A stretch of 62,248 nt of DNA, filler included, from Trichosphaerium sp. ATCC 40318 (lineage: Eukaryota > Protista > Tubulinea), in NCBI GenBank assembly GCA_038496445.1. It is 3 parts of 3 records of this genome, joined end to end, with 100 filler letters (N's around TTAATTAATTAA, not from the genome) between each part and the next. Parts side by side here need not be neighbours in the genome. Positions count along the whole stretch, not along the records: positions 51,546 to 62,248 come from JALMLS010000492.1; 2 more parts are not named here. One strand, written 5' to 3'. Shown here one piece after another: positions 51,546 to 62,248 of the stretch. Position 1 is the stretch's first letter, and each line of letters begins with the position of its first letter. The translations under genes were made by a program, and so were the position numbers. The notes under the pieces were generated by a model. The model worked only from the letters and a program-made list of their open reading frames with translations, ran no database searches and was not told where the DNA came from.

Positions 51546-54500
51546 ATGAGGTGAATCTGTATCAAGAATATGTCGAAGAGAACTCTCAATATTCTTCAAA
51601 CAAGATAACAGTTTGATTGCATCTATCTTGCAAATAAAGCGAAGACATGCCTTCTTTACACTGTAAGGAGGTGGAATACGAAGCAACGAGCAGATTGAAG
51701 TCAAAATCTTGACTTTGAATGAGTCAGAAAGAGCATCAAAAATAGCATCACTTGAAACATGATCAGCAATGACTTGAGAAAGCATCATGCCGCCATTGGT
51801 GCTTGATAATCTAAAGATGTATATCAGATATGGCTGTTGAACCTTTGTATAGCGTACAATGAGAGTAATGCAGATTGGACTGCTTGAGCTTTGTTCGATG
51901 AAAACACTGAAGCATCAAGACTTTCAATGACAACTTTCCATTCGGCATAAACATCATCTGATAGCTCTGCTTTCCCCTTAAAGTCCTTAACGAGTACTTT
52001 CTGGATATGCTTCAAATAAGGTAGTAATATACTGGCCTTATTAGCATGGTTCGCTGCCTTGACACTTGACAACAATACAGCCTAAACAAACCAGGTCAGA
52101 ATACTTTTGTTGACAATATTCAAAAAAAGGAGGAACCTTTGCAGGTGCAGATGTGACGCGATGACAAGCTTCTGTGACAATAAAGGCGTATACTTTATCC
52201 CTAGATTATATTAAGCACTTTTCAAAGCTATATCTAAAAGTGGTGTAGAAGAGCGTACATAATATCTGGGTATTCGTTTGCAAATGTAGTAAAGAAAGTG
52301 GCAGTGTAGTTTTTGTACTCCAAGAAAGAACGCTTTTGGTTTCCAATACTAGCCATAAGCTCAACGAGATTACTGTCGATCTTATCATCATTTGTGTCAA
52401 TGCTAGAAAGCAAAGATACCATACATTCAAGAGCTCCACCACGAACTTCTTTGTTCTCTGAAGAGATAGAAAATAGAAGCGGAGGGACTAGCGTGTTTAC
52501 GACCTTTGGGTGGTATGAAGATGGTACACAACATACGTATACTGATAGTATTTGTTGTACACGTCTTACGACTGTTGTAAGCTCTACAAAGAAGTCAGAA
52601 AGAACCACGTGTTTAAGCAGTAAAGAAAAGAAAAAAGAGCTGACTTACCGCCATCGTAAATAAAGGAGGCCAAAAAGGTTAGGCTCTCCACGCCAAGACC
52701 AGTTAAGATTGTATTAATAGGTCTCAAGAAAGGTTGAATACGACTGAAAGAACCCAATAAATTAACGAAAATGCGGTTGTATGCTTCGAGAACCTGAAAA
52801 AAAAAAAAAGAAAAGTTAACATCACGTTCATGTGTAAGTTGATTGTATCGTACCTTTGCACCATTGCCCATCGTTTTATATACTTGAAGAACTTGATCCA
52901 AAATAGCTAGGTTAACTGCAATGACACTTGCGGCATCGTGTTGAGCACGCCAGCCAGACATACTCTGCCTAGACACCAAAGTTAAAAATCGGATAGACTT
53001 ACTTAAACGGGAAAAAAAATTATGAAAGTTGGTATTTGTATGTACCAGAATACTTCAAAATTCCAGTTTGCAATGCCTCTAGCATCAGCAAGTGGTATAT
53101 GTGGTAAATCTGGAATCTCAGGTCTATGACGAATGATACCAGCCAATAATTTTGTGATTATTAAATTTCCCAAAACATCTTGGCTGTCAATCTTTGCCAA
53201 TAGACCAGTAGCGATAAGCACAGCAATAGGAGCGTGTTGACCGACTTGCAGTATAGTCTTGGCAATATCTGCTTTTTGATTACTTCTGATAGATGTCGTG
53301 ATATTTGATACGAGTTTGTTATTAACCTCCATTAGAGATCCTTTCAATGAGAGTCCTGGAAGTTTATTACAGATACCTTGTTGAGGTAAAAGTCCATAAG
53401 CAGCCTTGCACGTTTTGGAATACTATCGACAAGAGGTAAGAAATGTAGAAAAGAAAAGAACTTGAGTGAGAGAAAGCGAGAAAAAAGTATTTGATTGCCG
53501 TTTTAACAAAAAGTTTCTTATTACCTCCTTGCTGTAAGGTAGGAACTTGAGAACGGCAGCAAGTCTGAGTTCATGTTGAGATTCTGCGTTGACATAGAGG
53601 GAAAGTAATTTTGCTGTAGTGGCGTCTGGGAGTACTAAAAAAACAAAACTATGTCAGCCAAAACTATTCACAACTCAAGTTCATGCAGTTCTACGTACCA
53701 GTTGATTCCTTAGACCCCAAATCAAGTAATTCACGTGCTTCAGCCACTAGGTCAACATTTGTTGCATTGGTTATAATAGCCTTAATATCTTTGAATGCCA
53801 AAACAACATCAATTGTTGATGAGTCTCCACTTGAGAAAATCTCAGAAACACCTGTTGCCATCAAATCTTTGAGCTAAAAAGAAGGGGTTACTAAAAAATG
53901 CATTGTAATAACGAGTGTGTATATATATATTAGAGTGCGTTGCACGTGGGGTTTTTACCTTATCAGACGAGTTGTAGACTTTGTGTAAGTGATTGATTGC
54001 ATTGAATCTTGTTTGTTTATCCTTCGATTTTAAGCTGAGCAAAAGACTTGTTTCTTGTCCTTTAGCGACACCTTGCATAACAAGCTGATGTCTTGTACCC
54101 TGTAATATAGGTTCACATCGCTTTACAAGACCTTCTTTACGAGCTACAAGACCACTAATAGCTGCATCCATCAAATCGCTGCACTTATCATCAAGAACTA
54201 CCATTACTTGTTGTAACGCTTGTGTTTGTGTATCTGTAGGCTCTTCTAGTATCAAAAAGCTATTGATGAGCTCATGAGCAGTGTCTTCAACGAGATTAGG
54301 ATCACATTGGTTCGAGATGCACTCAGAAAGTCGAGCAGAAGTCAAAAGTTGTGAAAGCGCTGAACCAAATACAGGAGTTGCACTAAACGATTTTTGAGTA
54401 CTGGAGGGACTGAGAAGTAATATTTCTTGTCAACGTACGCGTTGCTTGATAAGAAAGAAACGTAGTACTCAAGGAACGTTGATATATCATAATTTTGCAT

Positions 54501-56067
54501 AGAGAGTCGCTCTAATGATGAAACCAAGCCACTTTAATTTCCATTAGAAAAGAAAAACAAAAGAAACACAAAAAATCTTTTCGTCTTTCAACGTACCCCC
54601 AAGTGTTTACAATTGTCTTATGTGACTCTTCTGGGATTTTGACATTCTAAAGAAAATGTTAATTTCAATTTCGAGTTTAATACATGGTCACAGAAGGATG
54701 ATATTCTGAAGCAAAAAAAAGTCAAAAGAACGTACCTTATTGTTTGCAAATAAAATACATATGACCTTAAGAAGCTGTGTGCGCGCTCCCTTTGGACAAC
54801 CAACAATAGCTAAACCTATCAAAGGTCCTACTATCGCTCCTTTGACGTGATGGAAGCAAGCTAAGACGACTAATGATCCAGTGAAAAAGTCTTTGCTTCC
54901 AGATTTTAAACCCTAAAGTGTACGAGTTAGCTTTGCTGAAAACAATTTTTAATGCTGTTAAAAACTTACCTTGGCGAGACTAGGGAGTACTCTACGGACA
55001 ATATTATCCTTTAATTGCGAAGAAACATTAGCTGCACGTGTTCTGTGTACAACACATGAAGCAATTGTAGAATGGAAAGATTGTAAAGCGCCATATAATG
55101 CATCCTCAACTGAAGCTTTTTCTACCTAATAGATTTGTTTTAAGAAATAATTTTTTTGGTTGATATTAATAATAACAGTTGAACAGAAAGAGACAATACA
55201 AAGCACGTGGATAGAAAGTCCATAAAAGGTAAAAAAAAAATTCAAAAAAATCATAAAAGGTAGTTCACGTACAGCCTCACAAATAAATGTCAAAAGTCCT
55301 GGGTTACGTAAAGAAGCGTCTATAAAAGTCTTTCGAGGTGGTGGAACACCGTCATTTTGTACTTTCTTCAAGAAACCCCAGTGTGGACCAGCACTATTAA
55401 TCAAAAAAATGACTTAGTTTGGAAAAAAAAAAATAAAACAAATAAAAAATGCGCTTGATAGCTAATCACATAATCCATTAAATGTCACATTTTTGTCCAT
55501 AGTGATTTTACGTACCGTGTTAAATCTACTAAGCGTAATACTTTGACGAATAGCTTTGTTTGATGGTAAGGCATTACAGACTGAATAACGAGGTCTGGAT
55601 TGTACTCGAATATTCTACATGGATGTTTAGGTGGCGTATAGTGAGAAAGGAGGAGTGTAAACAAAAGTCTGTAAAACTTTGTTCTCTTTTGATTATTAAA
55701 TGACGTCGTACCTGTATTGGCGTATCAAGTACTCAAACACTGTGTGTGCCGCTGTCAGAAGAAAAAATGGTGAAAGAAGTGTCATGAATCTCGTTAGTTT
55801 TTTGTCTAAGCTTGCGTTCTCTTCATCGAGTTGTAGCTCTCTTTTGTAATTTACGCTTTGTTGGCTGAATAACGTTGTTTCAAACTCTCCAAGCCTAGGA
55901 TCATTCTTTCTAAGCTTTTGAAGCGATCCTTTGGCCATGACAAGTAAATTTTCTGCAGAGAAGCGAGCAGCATCTACTTTTGAGAATATCAATGATCTAC
56001 GCGCTTTAATGCTCCTGTCGGAAACATTTCCCTTTTTTCTCAATTGTCTAGCTAGAGAAGTAGACAT
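51546..56067 (-). CDS. UTP10: U3 snoRNP / SSU processome protein UTP10 (HEATR1), 3' truncated
   Basis: N-terminus MSTSLARQL...SLIFS..DAA...EFETTLFS...LLSPFFLL..AH..FEYLIRQY and later PYHQT..FVKVL, HWGFL, followed by long helical exons. Confidence 0.92.
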
Positions 56068-56227
56068 GTTGAAATTATAGTTGTATTATGTTGTATTATT
56101 CTGTGTGCGCGTCTAGGCAATCATTTGAAACTGAGAAATTAGTAACAAAAAAATAAAGCCTAAAAAACTGCATACAAAAATAAAAAGTCGCGTACTTTCT
56201 TATAGACCCGCACAACGTTTCAGCGTT

Positions 56228-57085
56228 ATGACGGATAAAGAAGAAGACTCTTCAGCGTCGCTGGGTGACTCAACGACGTCCAGTCCGAAAACTAATGTAA
56301 AACAGGCAAAAGGTATTAAAAGTGTTTGTATTAGCGTTAACGCTCTCTTTAGATTACATTAAAAAAGGAAAAGGTACCTGTTGTTAGGTTTGCTAGGTTT
56401 GTGTAATGATATCCTGTTCAGTTATTGTATTCTTCAAAGCAACAGGCAACGCGCCCGTTATGAAACAAAAAAAATTCTTTCTGAGAGCATCAGCCAATTT
56501 TCATACTATTACTACCTTCTTGAGGGGCCAGTTGAAATATAACGCAGAGGAACCATTGGTACGAATTTATTTATTTATCCACCTTCATTGGGCCGATACA
56601 CGCCTTCAAACATCTCTATGGATACACAACGAATCCCTAACGCCTTTTTTTTTTCATTAACTTCGCACAATTTCAAGAGCGAGTCACGTTATTGAAAGTG
56701 CCCATACATCATCTCTTTTGCGTATATTGACATGACACCTTAGTACCTATTTGTCAACAGTACATTTCAACCGAATCCGGATCAAACTATTTCTGATCTA
56801 TTCCACGTACGTCAACTAGCAACCTGTCGTTGTTTTTTTCATCTTGGCCTATTATTTAAAAGCAAAAAAAGAAAAACATTTCTTTCTTGAAGAAGGCGCT
56901 TTTATTCACTCTCTATCAAGTGTTTCCACAACAACGGTAAGCTCGTAGTGAATTATTGTACAACAGCCGCATGGTACGACTCTTTGGAAAAGAGGAAAAC
57001 AGACTTCTTTTAATTTTTTTTTCGATGTTTTTTTCCTCTTGTAATAAAAAACCCAAAAAGTCGCTCATACTCAGCTAGGGGCTAA
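56228..57085 (+). CDS. ATG12: Autophagy ubiquitin-like protein ATG12
   Basis: VFFKATGNAPVMKQKKF, YLFVNSTFQPNPDQ, CFHNNGKLVVNYCTTAAW|G-stop. Confidence 0.93.
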
Positions 57086-57099
57086 ACCGTCGATCATTT

Positions 57100-57509
57100 C
57101 TACACGACAGCTAACTCAATGAGTGCTGTGTGCGTTATTACCCAACAAACCTGTACAAAATTAAATAAACGCTTCCTAGTCCATTCTGTCTACATTGTAT
57201 GCGTTATAACGTACCACAAATAAGCCCATGGATGTCATTAGACCTTCCATCATTAATTCTCTGCTTTCGTCAGGATCAGAGCCAATATCGCTTGAATCTG
57301 AGTAACGTGACGTAACTAGCCAAGATACGGCAATATTTGCGGAAGCAAATCTAAAATACGTTAAAACGCAACTCTGATACGCTAAAGGGAGCTTACACGA
57401 GTATTGGTGATGCTCCACTAAGTTGTAATACACCGCATACAATACCAGCGATTAGTCCTAGAATTTGTCTTATCCAGTGTATGAGCGTCTTCAAGCTTTC
57501 TTTATTCAT
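57100..57509 (-). CDS. RAB5IF: Rab5ip-family membrane protein (RAB5IF/OPTI-like)
   Basis: LIHWIRQILGLIAGIVCGVLQLSG...ELMMEGLMTSMGLFV|VCWVITHT. Confidence 0.85.
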
Positions 57510-58348
57510 TGCTTTTATTGATACTGTACCGTGACACTCACAACACGAAAAAAACAGAAAAATTTCAACAGATTTCAATTGACGCCTTGCTTGCTATTGT
57601 GACGGAATAATAATCAGTGAGAGTTATTCAATACTACCAACGGTTACTCGAGATATTTAACAGACGAAAGAAATTGTCTACGCGTATGCCTTTTTTGCCT
57701 GTAAACGATCTATGCGAGCCCATATAGCGTCAGGAACCACCAACACGAAGTTAAGCAGGAATACTGAGATTGTAAAAGAAGTGACGAGAACATCCTATCC
57801 GCGTATCATTACGTTGGGTGGGGTTAGATTTTAGCTGACAGTTGTTAAAGGGGTTGTTGTGTATAAAAGCTCGTCTATACTAGTACGTTTGTGAGCGGTG
57901 CGTTGACATTGCGTTTATGACTGTTTTCAGTGTTTCAGTGACGTTTCGGTTTAAAAAACGTGATCTAGCGGTTATACCTAGCTAACCCGTTTACATCCTC
58001 TTTAGTTCTACACTCAACATTTCTACGCGCGTTCGATGTGTTGCTACCCTTGTTTACACGTTTTACGGTAGATGAATCTCTTTAGCGCCAATGCCGTCCA
58101 GATGTCATTGTTGTGTTCGCTTCCTTTAGTACTACGCGTTTACGTTGCGTTCAAGTGATTTAGAACTGATTTTCCGCTACTAAAAACTATGGTTCGTATG
58201 CGCAACATGAATTGTTCGAGAAGTGTTTGCGTTGTCACATAGTTGCGTCTGCGCCTGTTGTTGCATCAACTCGAATTCCACGTATTCTCAAAATCACATA
58301 CAATGGTTAACACGACCTCATGTCTTCGTTATATGAGGGTTTGAGACA

Positions 58349-58388
58349 TCCCACAATTTATTTCTTGGATAACATTTGTTGTTTAAAA
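58349..58388 (+). promoter_or_regulatory. Putative snRNA-type upstream element (TCCCACAA) plus TATA-like TTTAAAA
   Basis: TCCCACAA at 58349-58356 fits the Dictyostelium DUSE / plant USE core; TTTAAAA at 58382-58388; both lie just upstream of the structured element. Confidence 0.45.
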
Positions 58389-58409
58389 GTATTTTTGGAT
58401 TATCCTATT

Positions 58410-58775
58410 ATCAGGACGGCCATCCATCGTTAACGATTGATGATCCCCTCTAAAATATATTCTTCTTGTTAAGAATTTGTTGTACATTGCAGTGACTCCG
58501 AACTTTCAGCGCAGGCTTATAATGTTTGAGGACTTTTCGGTATGTGGTGCATACCGTAGGTCACCATTGCAATTTCGTACATTTCGGTGCCTTCTGCCTT
58601 ATGTTCGAGGGCTTCAGTGTGGTGGTGCACACTGTTGTCGTGCAACGAGTTCCTAACATGTCGTACCTTTCGGTTCTGCCGTAAGTGTACGAGGACTTCA
58701 ACGCGGTGGTGCGCACTGTGGTCCATATGGAGTGTAGTAACAGTTGGGGTTCATCTGATCGTTAATTTTTTTTTT
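58410..58775 (+). ncRNA. Unidentified ~340-nt structured RNA with three repeated two-hairpin modules
   Basis: Four nested long-range stems, three modules with compensatory stem changes, terminal T10. Confidence 0.7.
58766..58775 (+). terminator. T10 run, putative Pol III-type terminator
   Basis: Immediately follows the closing stem of the structured element; T-runs are common in this genome. Confidence 0.4.
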
Positions 58776-59338
58776 GAATTGAAAGAAATATCAAGGTTTC
58801 TCTGCTTGCTGTGAATATCTTGTTAATCATCTCAGCCCTTTTGCTTACATGACTATGTGTTACTTGATTGTTCATTTAAAAAGTTGTTACATAATACAAT
58901 CTGAAATAGCAGAAAAAGACACGTGGTAGTAAGTAGCTTGTAAATAGAAAATTTCACTCAGTACAATCAAATACCTACTGATTTTGAATAACTGAATTTG
59001 GATCTGGCTGCTTATAATCGTCATGGGCGACAACAAGTAGCTATAGTATGATATCATCAAACGGATGCATTCTACAGCTACTGTTGCTAAGTTAGGCTGA
59101 AGCTCAAGATGTGAACTAACGTCTTTTTATTAACCACTGGTTGCAATCAGAAAACACTGTTACTACAAAAACTACAAGGTGAGGGCAACGAACAATTTAT
59201 TATAGTTGAAGAAACCAACGGCGGTTACTCAGTTTTTAGGACAATCGCTTGGAATCTAATTTAAACAAGTTAGTGGAAGCCTATTGATAAATGGGCTAAC
59301 ATGTTTTACCTTAAATATGGCTTCTGTTGGTGTGCAAG

Positions 59339-61846
59339 TAATGATGTTGGTTTAAGAATAAACTGCAAATTCATATTTATTCGGAAGTGGTCAAAAGTTA
59401 TTTTTATTTATTCATATAATCATTTGTGTTCATCTTGGAGCAAATGGTTACGACACACAGAGTACTTACAAACACGAGTAGGAGAGAGTCTGTTTCTATC
59501 ATTAGTAATTAAGCGACTAGCCTGTGAAAAGCTTCTTTCAGTCATTGCTTGAGAGGCTGGAATCGCTAAATATTTCTGAGCCAAAGATGCTAAGATTGGA
59601 TACTTTTCTTTGTTTGTTCTCCACCATCTAAGCTCTTCGCCATCATTAGTGGTTTTTATCGGTGGTTCTACCTTGTATCTTTCTAGTTCTTTGCTTGTAT
59701 CAAGCGGAGTAGTAGGGGATGGTGCACTACTAAACAGAAGTAAGTAAACATTGAAACAAAAAAAAGTAAAACAGAAAAAAGACCAATACGTGAAGAATTG
59801 TCTCGCTTCTCCTGCTTCTGAAACTCCTCCTCTAGTGCTCACTGCACTAGGTACTTCACCTTCAATACCCTTATTGTACAGTTAGTACGCATTATGTAAA
59901 TTATATTGTACTGTAGGCATGTTCTCATCTCTTGATACAGCTACAAGTTCATTAAATTCGGCTTCTAATATTTCCCAAGCTTCATCCTCGTCTCCATCAG
60001 TGAGGTGGTTGCAGCCCTTAAAGCGCGGATCAAGGACTGTTGCTAAGAGGGTAACAACAGGGAGCTCATCCCATATGAGACGTATGGCATTGAGATAGTT
60101 TGTAGCCACATTTTTGGTTTGTATTTGCATTTCATCAAGATTTTCATTTTCAGCAATTTCTTCCACTACACAAGTCAGTAAAAAACAATAATGAAGCTAA
60201 ACAACACATACACGGATGAATCATCTCTTGGAGAAGCTTTTCTATCTTTTCTAAGGCCACCAACACCCATGATTGCGTTGTGTACTTCTCTGCTTCGAGA
60301 ATTTCAATAGCATAAACTGTTGGTTGAAACAAAAGAATCATGTTCTCAATAAAACTCCATTTCTCAAAGGAAAACTCAGGTACGTATGGCTACAAACAAA
60401 GTAAATATTTACACGTGCACAAAAAAACCAGTACATACCCTAAATCTACTATCACATACTAGTCGGTAGTTTGTAAGCATTCGTCTCATTTCGTGAGCTT
60501 TTTTCAACATTGTAATTGTTGATGAGAAGCGTGTACAAGTATCACGTGGCAGTTTTTTGTATTGGTCACTGCAAAACGCTTTCCAGGCGCGTCTAAACGG
60601 ATCTGAGCAGCTACACCTCGCAATAAACACTCTTAAGGGCTTGAGAATGCTTTCTTCAATTTCTGGGATTAATGCTTTACGCATTGCGTTATTCAAGATG
60701 TGACAGAGGCAGCGAAGGTCAGTAACCATTCTAGGGTACCACCAATTAATTTTATACAAGAACAATGGTAGTTAAACGTACTCAGAGGTATATTTCGCCA
60801 CTTGGGCGAGTGTGTCTCCGCGAAGCTTTCTTGAAGAAAAGTAAGAACAATAAATAATAAAAAAAACCCACAAAAAAAACTAGTCGTACCCAATAGTGAA
60901 TTTAACTGAGGCCAATTCGCCTCCATCTGTTACACCAGCAACTGGTAAAACACCATCACCTAGCCACGCCACGTTTGAGCCATCCCACTCTCCACAAAGT
61001 ACGTCAGCTACAAGTGAACCAATAGTTACCGCTGCCAAAAAAAGTAAGCAAAAAAAAAGTTTAAACAAAGTTGTTTCGTGCCTTTGTGGTCTTCTTCACA
61101 AGGCACCACACCTACCAACTTACGACACAATACATAGTCATCGGATATCCAATGCATTGATATGCCAGCGTAATATTCTTTGGAAACTTTACTTTTCCAA
61201 AGATCGACTGCAAAGGTTGGTGACTTCGCTGTTTGAGTTATCAGCTTAGCTTCATTTATTGTTTTGTCGCTGAGTGCATCAGCCCGTAAAGTGATCTTGT
61301 TTCTCCCTGGTAGAATGAACCCAGGTACAGCATAATTAAACAATAGTTTAAAGTACCGTTTTGATACGAGGTGAAAAGGAAGATTGTGAGCAACAAAACA
61401 AATAGCCAACAAATCTATCAATTTCTAGCGAACAATTAGAAATTGCAAAAAACCACTTGTTATTACCTCTTGTTCCCCCGGTAATAAAGGCCGAATGGTT
61501 CTGGACACATACTTGTCCATAGGACCTGTTTTATCTTCTCCGTCAGCAAAAGAGTCTGTTTTGGAGTCGTAGCCATGTTTGGTGCGTAAGTGAGTTAACA
61601 GGTTGCTTGTTGATGTTCTTTTAGGTCGAGGCACAAAACAACTACAACGTTTACACTGAAAGCCTCCATCAACATGTACAAAGTGTTTATACACTGGTGA
61701 TCGCAGAGTACGAATACTACAAACCACTGTGTTTTTGGGCTCAGCCATCTCGATGAATTGTGTAAATTCAAAAAGTCAATTCATAGTCCAATTTTTTTTG
61801 GTGTATTCAAATTTATTCTTTATTTATTCTTAAACCAACATCATTA
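59339..61846 (-). mobile_element. Complete hAT DNA transposon (2508 bp)
   Basis: Perfect 24-bp TIRs TAATGATGTTGGTTTAAGAATAAA (59339-59362 / 61823-61846); 8-bp TSD TGTGCAAG / TGGGCAAG with one mismatch. Confidence 0.95.
59420..61748 (-). CDS. hAT transposase, 9 exons
   Basis: BED finger (CKRC...NLLTHLRTKH), FAVDLW, VTDGG, CLCH, TRFSST, LDPRFK, WW...YPILASLAQKYLAIPASQAMTERSFS; all exons splice in frame. Confidence 0.93.
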
Positions 61847-62248
61847 TGGGCAAGGTGTTAACAACAGCGATGCTGGTATCAACTTCACCATCTATTGTAG
61901 TAACAATAGAAGCGATGTCACCGTCACGTGTTGTAACAGTTGTAACAATAGTTTGATCGTCATCAACACACTTCACAGTCCATTTTTTTCCATCCTAATA
62001 ACAGATGGAAGATGAGAAACACGTGTTTCAAACTGAACAAACTGAACAAAAAAGACTGTTGAAAAGAACTGAAACATACCTGAACCCAAGGAGGACACTG
62101 AGGACCTTCTGTTGTAGGTTGAATCCTTGGATAATGACATTCTCCTTGTTCAAACTCCCATGTACGTTTCTAATACTGGTAAGGAACAACAAACTTATAA
62201 GCACTAGAAGAAAATCCTACAAAGTACAAAAAAAAAAAAGATGCCGTA

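Follow-up and report, generated by a model that had tools for sequence, protein, structure and literature searches.

The window analysed here is a stretch of 62,248 nt from Trichosphaerium sp. ATCC 40318, and the element that we describe lies in its last piece (positions 51546-62248, 10.7 kb), which is intron-rich eukaryotic DNA with a G+C content of ~37% and the standard genetic code. This piece carries UTP10/HEATR1, ATG12, an EMC6/RAB5IF-family gene and a hAT DNA transposon (Table 1). Between the latter two lies a stand-alone non-coding RNA gene on the + strand (~58413-58766, ~353 nt from its putative start), separated from the transcript start of the EMC6/RAB5IF-family gene by ~870 nt of intergenic DNA.

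Several features of the neighborhood can be recorded alongside. UTP10 and ATG12 start head-to-head with ~160 nt between them, and ATG12 (+) and the EMC6/RAB5IF-family gene (-) are convergent, with 3' regions overlapping at ~56945-57148. UTP10 is highly diverged here, the best relative (48% identical; spliced proteins were compared one exon at a time) coming from activated sludge. It encodes a protein of the U3 snoRNP and the small-subunit processome, and its location 2.3 kb from the RNA gene is probably a coincidence. An AT-rich hairpin within its coding region (53118-53209; z ~ -3 in a nearby window, weak miRNA-family scores) probably arose by chance. The hAT element ends in perfect 24-nt terminal inverted repeats, is flanked by target duplications of 8 bp that differ at one position (TGTGCAAG/TGGGCAAG) and encodes an intron-split transposase with a BED finger, an RNase H fold and a dimerisation domain; contigs from a public RNA run (X4) cover it at 59370-59600. 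The intergenic stretch 57540-58340 (~800 nt) is slightly G+C-richer and T-skewed, and has no RNA contigs in four runs.

Table 1. Genes and RNA features of the 10.7-kb piece, in order of position along the window.
Feature	Position	Strand	Remarks
UTP10/HEATR1	51546-56067	-	start 56067; many short introns
ATG12	56204-56974	+	introns mapped from RNA contigs
EMC6/RAB5IF-family gene	56945-57539	-	transcript start near 57539; introns mapped from RNA contigs
USE/DUSE-like snRNA-gene upstream element TCCCACAA	58349-58356	+	64 nt before putative start A58413
TATA-like box TTTAAAA	58382-58388	+	at -31; 23-25 nt past USE-like element
5' leader, weakly folded	58413-58428	+	complementary to 18S helix 34; start putative
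Terminal rod, 5' strand	58429-58448	+	C-like box UUGAUGA (58437-43) and CCCC
Stems ii / iii / iv, 5' strands	58456-63 / 58467-85 / 58486-94	+	fold
Module A	58496-58562	+	hairpin 1 joined directly to hairpin 2; loop UGGUG
Module B	58574-58639	+	perfect four-way junction; hairpin 2 loop GUGGUG
Stem iii, 3' strand	58640-58658	+	fold
Module C	58661-58724	+	hairpin 2 loop GUGGUG
Stems ii and i, 3' strands	58729-58765	+	D-like box CUGA (58755-58)
T10 run	58766-58775	+	putative Pol III-type terminator; directly after terminal stem
hAT DNA transposon	59339-61846	-	TIRs, transposase domains

The element is the top-folding 363-nt window of the piece (z -5.8, runner-up -3.1). Folding of the + strand gives -134.7 kcal/mol (z -6.5), a value reached by 0/100 shuffles, and folding of the - strand gives -107.4 kcal/mol; a comparison of the two folds counted 18 G-U pairs on the + strand and 8 on the - strand, the direction of bias claimed in the initial annotation. 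The four nested stems proposed there were all recovered in place, with ensemble pair probabilities of 0.93-1.0 for the rod helices. Stem iii has the 18 bp, three G-U pairs and one mismatch (A-C) ascribed to it; stem iv is present where it was placed but is best drawn as 58486-94 with 58565-73. Together with RNA contigs confined to the element (see below), the fold bias bears out the proposal of a + strand structured RNA of ~350 nt. The base of the rod also contains a perfect 12-bp palindrome (ATCGTTAACGAT, 58426-58437), and the leader loop (58417-58422) a self-complementary GGCC; either could permit dimers.

Three modules hang from this rod, each made of two hairpins that abut without spare bases. 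Hairpin 1 has a pyrimidine-rich internal loop and a small apical stem. Similarity among the modules exceeds that of dinucleotide shuffles (B-C 0/2000, A-C 0/2000, A-B 2/2000), as expected of the true repeat that had been suggested, and a covariance-model search of the piece returned the three copies only, with the next match at 8 bits and no fourth copy. Hairpin 2 carries double-sided changes at 3 of its 7 pairs while loops and linkers are constant, and the apical stem of hairpin 1 shows one such change; this pattern agrees with the structural selection first read from it, with little statistical power given that the covariation rests on three paralogous rows. The module C stem has two mismatches on the + strand, one of which is repaired by A58701G in both natural variants described below.

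The loops themselves invite comparison with known RNAs. All hairpin 2 loops share UGGU and all hairpin 1 internal loops share UUUC. T-box antiterminators use UGGN, and a T-box-like tRNA catcher would pair its UGGU loops with tRNA ACCA and the UUC of hairpin 1 with the Phe anticodon. We consider this reading extremely unlikely: it is post hoc, the UU is predicted to be paired with AA, and the RNA has neither T-box motifs nor an Rfam match. Alternatively, hairpin 2 with its GUGGYG-type loop and YGUNR turn would stand for helix 3 in a trimer that imitates the Alu domain, binding SRP9/14 and slowing translation. As in the SRP Alu domain and Alu RNAs, a GUGG-loop hairpin is followed by UGUNR in modules B (58633) and C (58717), a long rod joins the ends and transcription is presumably by Pol III; module A has CGUAG. 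The Alu domain is defined by UGUNR between helices 3 and 4 (PMC4605306) and has a conserved G4-U23 wobble (PMC4238359). Here, in contrast, no helix 4 follows the motif and the order helix 3-UGUNR-helix 4 is absent, the wobble is replaced by A-U or G-C, and the turn G is Watson-Crick paired in all three copies. The GCY partner is taken up by the covarying stem of hairpin 1 itself, and the module A motif is gone from one natural variant (v7). We consider an Alu mimic quite improbable. The RNA also differs from SRP and Alu RNAs in having three copies of the unit and no S domain.

The RNA gene is expressed. Two contigs of public run X4 lie wholly inside the element (58443-58739 and 58448-58714), and no contigs of this run were found in the flanks 57610-58413 and 58816-59351. 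The run represents RNA, as its contigs are spliced at the neighboring introns; the transcript evidence comes from this one run, and strand, ends and level are not readable from the contigs. The leader and the C/D-like boxes lie outside the coverage of the two contigs. Three other runs contain spliced neighboring mRNAs (one of them with an oligo-dT-type adapter) and the element was not found in these, which fits a non-polyadenylated RNA.

The two contigs represent natural variants of the element, possibly paralogues or copies from related strains, and were compared with the window. Variant v6 differs by 7 substitutions and 1 gap and variant v7 by 16 substitutions and 7 gaps; the neighboring mRNAs differ by ~1%. 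Both were rebuilt from the listed differences, with 3 and 2 near the contig ends not included, and refolded at -138.3 (v6) and -130.2 (v7). Placing the same changes at random sites gave equally stable folds in 4/400 (v6) and 0/400 (v7) cases, and v7 retains 86% of the pairs versus 54% for randomly placed changes. In v7, both partners of one stem iv pair are deleted and the base of hairpin 2A is rebuilt with new pairs, while hairpin 1A is weakened. The fold is thus preserved much more fully in the natural variants than in random mutants, and the RNA structure is under selection.

These results bear on the MITE that the initial annotation had weighed as an alternative. A non-autonomous MITE or SINE with internal tandem repeats, accidentally transcribed, would account for the terminal inverted repeat of ~20 bp, the 8-bp direct repeat ATCGTTAA flanking the core, the existence of two variants and the hAT element 570 bp away. 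The direct repeat, however, follows from the palindrome at 58426-37, and the ends of the element are unlike the TIR of the neighboring hAT. The G-U strand bias, a promoter and terminator that appear to be external with no internal A/B boxes, contigs without foreign flanks and variants that preserve RNA structure further argue for a gene, and we regard a mobile element as very unlikely. The 10.7-kb piece contains one locus of this kind.

The upstream USE-like and TATA-like boxes may function as a promoter, and the T10 run as a terminator, judging from their sequence and placement; promoter spacing in turn points to A58413 as the probable transcript start. The element TCCCACAA has one mismatch to the dictyostelid DUSE, [AT]CCCA[AT]AA, which is found ~63 bp upstream of dictyostelid ncRNA genes (PMC3188802), and the Tetrahymena USE occupies a similar position (PMC3273799). 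Because TCCCACAA has 2 matches in the piece with ~1 expected by chance, only its position is informative. A USE-TATA spacing of 23-24 bp is a mark of Pol III in Arabidopsis (PMC8287931). T8+ runs occur just four times on the + strand in this piece, the T10 run being one of them, and the RNA body is free of T5 runs, as are 23% of equal windows. The promoter, the T10 end, the leader (58413-58428) and the competing Watson-Crick helix described below were absent from the initial annotation. Dictyostelid Class I RNAs are similar in having a DUSE ~60 nt upstream, a T-run end, paired ends, possibly several copies and a function that is not known; they are 50-60 nt long and share a conserved CCUUACAGCCAA motif (PMC3188802) that is absent here.

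In line with the earlier assignment to no known class, Rfam searches at E up to 10 (the piece, 551 nt and two short parts) gave chance matches only, and ARAGORN found nothing. A pattern scan of metagenomes produced 8 matches, and the 7 inspected were chance matches without the fold; scans of viral collections gave chance matches or none, and a scan of prokaryotic genomes gave no match. This blank from pattern and model searches says little, since eukaryotic genomes are scarce in the metagenomic, viral and prokaryotic collections. Sm sites, hammerhead motifs and B boxes are absent from the element. Likenesses to U2 (AUUGCAGU, AGUGUAGUA), to the hammerhead and to plant 7SL were dropped as leads; AUUGCAGU is altered in v7. 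The type-3 promoter and T-run terminator of Pol III-type telomerase RNA are both present here by sequence. Among 19 template motifs tried, the + strand has only CCUAAC (58652), which lies inside stem iii and is 1 nt short for TTAGGG and minimal for TTAGG. On the - strand, AACCCCAAC (58743-58751) matches a TTGGGG telomere template over 9 nt, which we take as chance on a strand without promoter or favorable fold.

A highly diverged RNase MRP/P, SRP or telomerase RNA missed by covariance models would still fit the promoter, which is of a type shared by all of these. The 3' end of the RNA has some likeness to MRP CR-IV/CR-V, and CCCC/GGGG with a bulged U to P4. Non-canonical SRP RNAs have previously escaped models (PMC4605306). 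Of the features expected of RNase MRP/P, the RNA lacks P2/P3, a correctly placed CR-I and GARAR; it also lacks SRP helix 8 with its symmetric loop, any GNRA hairpin loop and, on the + strand, a convincing template for telomere repeats. With Rfam blank at E up to 10 as well, we consider a diverged member of these families improbable.

The ends of the rod offer a further clue. The TGATGA (58438), CTGA (58755) and 2-nt bulge on which a likeness to boxes C and D had been based are all present. The box C-like sequence has U where RUGAUGA has R, and the box D-like CUGA is in k-turn register with it, the GA/AG pairs being followed by U-U, G-C, A-U and U-A. Assuming independence, both boxes would occur by chance with a probability of ~1e-4 (0.0068 x 0.018). 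The standard k-turn bulge is 3 nt (PMC5061560); here it measures 2 nt, or 3 nt with an extra unpaired U opposite. When modeled with neither sheared pairs nor protein, a Watson-Crick helix, GAUGA/UCAUC, beats the k-turn form by 11 kcal/mol. The Watson-Crick terminal helix has a probability of 0.96-0.98, and as modeled this competing helix can account for part of the C/D look. C'/D' boxes were not found in the RNA, which has a single CUGA and a single C-like box; neither was a free guide upstream of D, where the sequence lies in the rod.

The leader that precedes the C-like box is complementary to 18S rRNA and is predicted to form 11 bp (one G-U) with AUGGCCGUUCU and then 5 bp with GGUGG. At -22.8 to -23.8 kcal/mol, no other 16-mer of the RNA pairs better with 18S, and the leader costs only 2.2 kcal/mol to open. 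The target was a 770-nt eukaryotic 18S fragment from another organism, taken from public contig L025, on which the nulls (14/3000, 19/1500 and 11/7126) correspond to p 0.002-0.013; our own scaling to all rRNA, from this fragment of another organism, gives p ~0.02-0.09. Complementarity of the whole RNA to the 770-nt fragment is not enriched (9 runs versus 8.2 expected). No LSU or 5S sequences of eukaryotes turned up in scans for them, so the rRNA test covered part of 18S. A cluster of short matches to the 70 nt at the 3' end of 18S (3 versus 0.7, 12/400) was post hoc and mostly in paired regions, and was not used. The 18S fragments in the viral collection (L025 3632-4543 and L026 4059-4305) are joined to unrelated sequence and are contamination or chimeras. 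The base of hairpin 2 (AGGAC...UCC) is similar in sequence to the leader, as may be the 5' end of 5S rRNA.

The leader site corresponds to ~1267-1285 in yeast numbering, in helix 34, which holds ac4C1280, Um1269 and Gm1271 (PMC5464676); the same 18S stretch is listed as a universal 18S probe (PMC12727693). The C/D RNA snR4 has a 5' guide before box C that targets helix 34 with C1280 looped out (PMC5464676). Here the leader would pair across the CCG of C1280, with the target C neither flanked nor looped out. In sense orientation, the helix-34 stretch recurs in the module loops, over 10 nt in module B. Taken by itself this is expected by chance; the match is notable only because it involves the same site as the leader.

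We tentatively propose that the element encodes an independently transcribed box C/D-type RNA, akin to U3, U8, U13 and snR4, whose three-module body is new. SNAPc and TBP at the USE-like and TATA-like boxes would recruit Pol III, yielding a ~353-nt RNA ending in U's. At the rod base, Snu13 could then bind the C/D motif and switch it from the Watson-Crick form to the k-turn, and Nop56, Nop58 and fibrillarin would join and place the RNA in the nucleolus. There, the free 5' leader may pair with the 5' strand of 18S helix 34 in the pre-ribosome, acting as a folding chaperone or as a gate for C1280 acetylation by Kre33/NAT10 and for the snR40/snR55 methylation site; it would not be a methylation guide. 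The three modules would be three copies of one protein-binding surface, and their GUGGUGC loops, repeating the helix-34 sequence, could load or hold factors that recognise helix 34.

Several known RNAs offer parallels. U3 has its own snRNA-type promoter (PMC8287931), leaders before the C box also occur in snR4 and snR45 (PMC5464676), and protists have lineage-specific long C/D RNAs such as Tetrahymena TtnuCD32 (PMC3273799). The latter likewise combines rRNA complementarity with membership of no family; it is 98 nt long (PMC3273799), and no Rfam model matched the RNA described here. As in snR4, snR45 and SNORD13, a putative rRNA-complementary 5' segment precedes the C-like box, the D-like box lies 3', the interior is structured and transcription appears independent; snR4 targets the same helix 34. 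In contrast to these, the leader would cover C1280, no second guide or C' box was found, and the RNA has three modules, a Pol III-type end and a 2-nt bulge. U3 (transcribed by Pol III in plants) and U8 are similar in the USE-TATA promoter (putative here), a rod with a C/D-like motif at its foot and a 5' antisense domain; U3 itself was rejected, since the RNA lacks box A, the hinge, box B/C and a long 5' domain (its 5' part being ~16-25 nt) and has no Rfam match. Against the C/D reading stand the 2-nt bulge, the U in the C box, the more stable Watson-Crick form and the missing C'/D' boxes. The RNA would work most like snR4, SNORD13 and U3; with its bulge, its lack of C'/D', its target that is not looped out and its lack of boxes A and B/C, it is not assigned to any of these families.

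A different function was suggested initially, namely a multivalent scaffold or decoy. A new Pol III scaffold or decoy outside ribosome assembly, with the Watson-Crick rod as spacer and modules that sequester or cluster one protein or RNA, would explain why loops and linkers stay fixed while stems change, why the variants converge on a single module consensus, why the Watson-Crick terminal helix is so probable and why Rfam is blank. It is a candidate reading that names no ligand, and it leaves both the C/D motifs (~1e-4) and the leader match (0.02-0.09) to chance; we consider it possible and somewhat doubtful. Given the putative promoter and terminator, the leader and the C/D-like ends, an independent U3/U13-type C/D RNA is no less likely than a decoy class that is entirely new. 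It is possible, though less likely than not, that the RNA represents a new class of eukaryotic Pol III RNA with three tandem two-hairpin modules on a rod, a multivalent scaffold or decoy that possibly both mimics and pairs with helix 34. Such a class would lie outside the snoRNA, SRP, P/MRP and telomerase families.

New families of stand-alone structured RNA genes are rare in eukaryotes, and the RNA of Trichosphaerium brings together a putative promoter and terminator, transcript evidence and natural variants that preserve structure. Homologues of snR4 were not found in human, and how acetylation of helix 34 is directed there is an open question (PMC9670809). Should the RNA be of the C/D type and act on 18S helix 34, it would bear on this question, and its triplicated internal domain would be unusual. 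Should it not be a C/D RNA, it would be a compact multivalent scaffold of a new kind, whose ligand should be easy to pull down because the three modules are near-identical.
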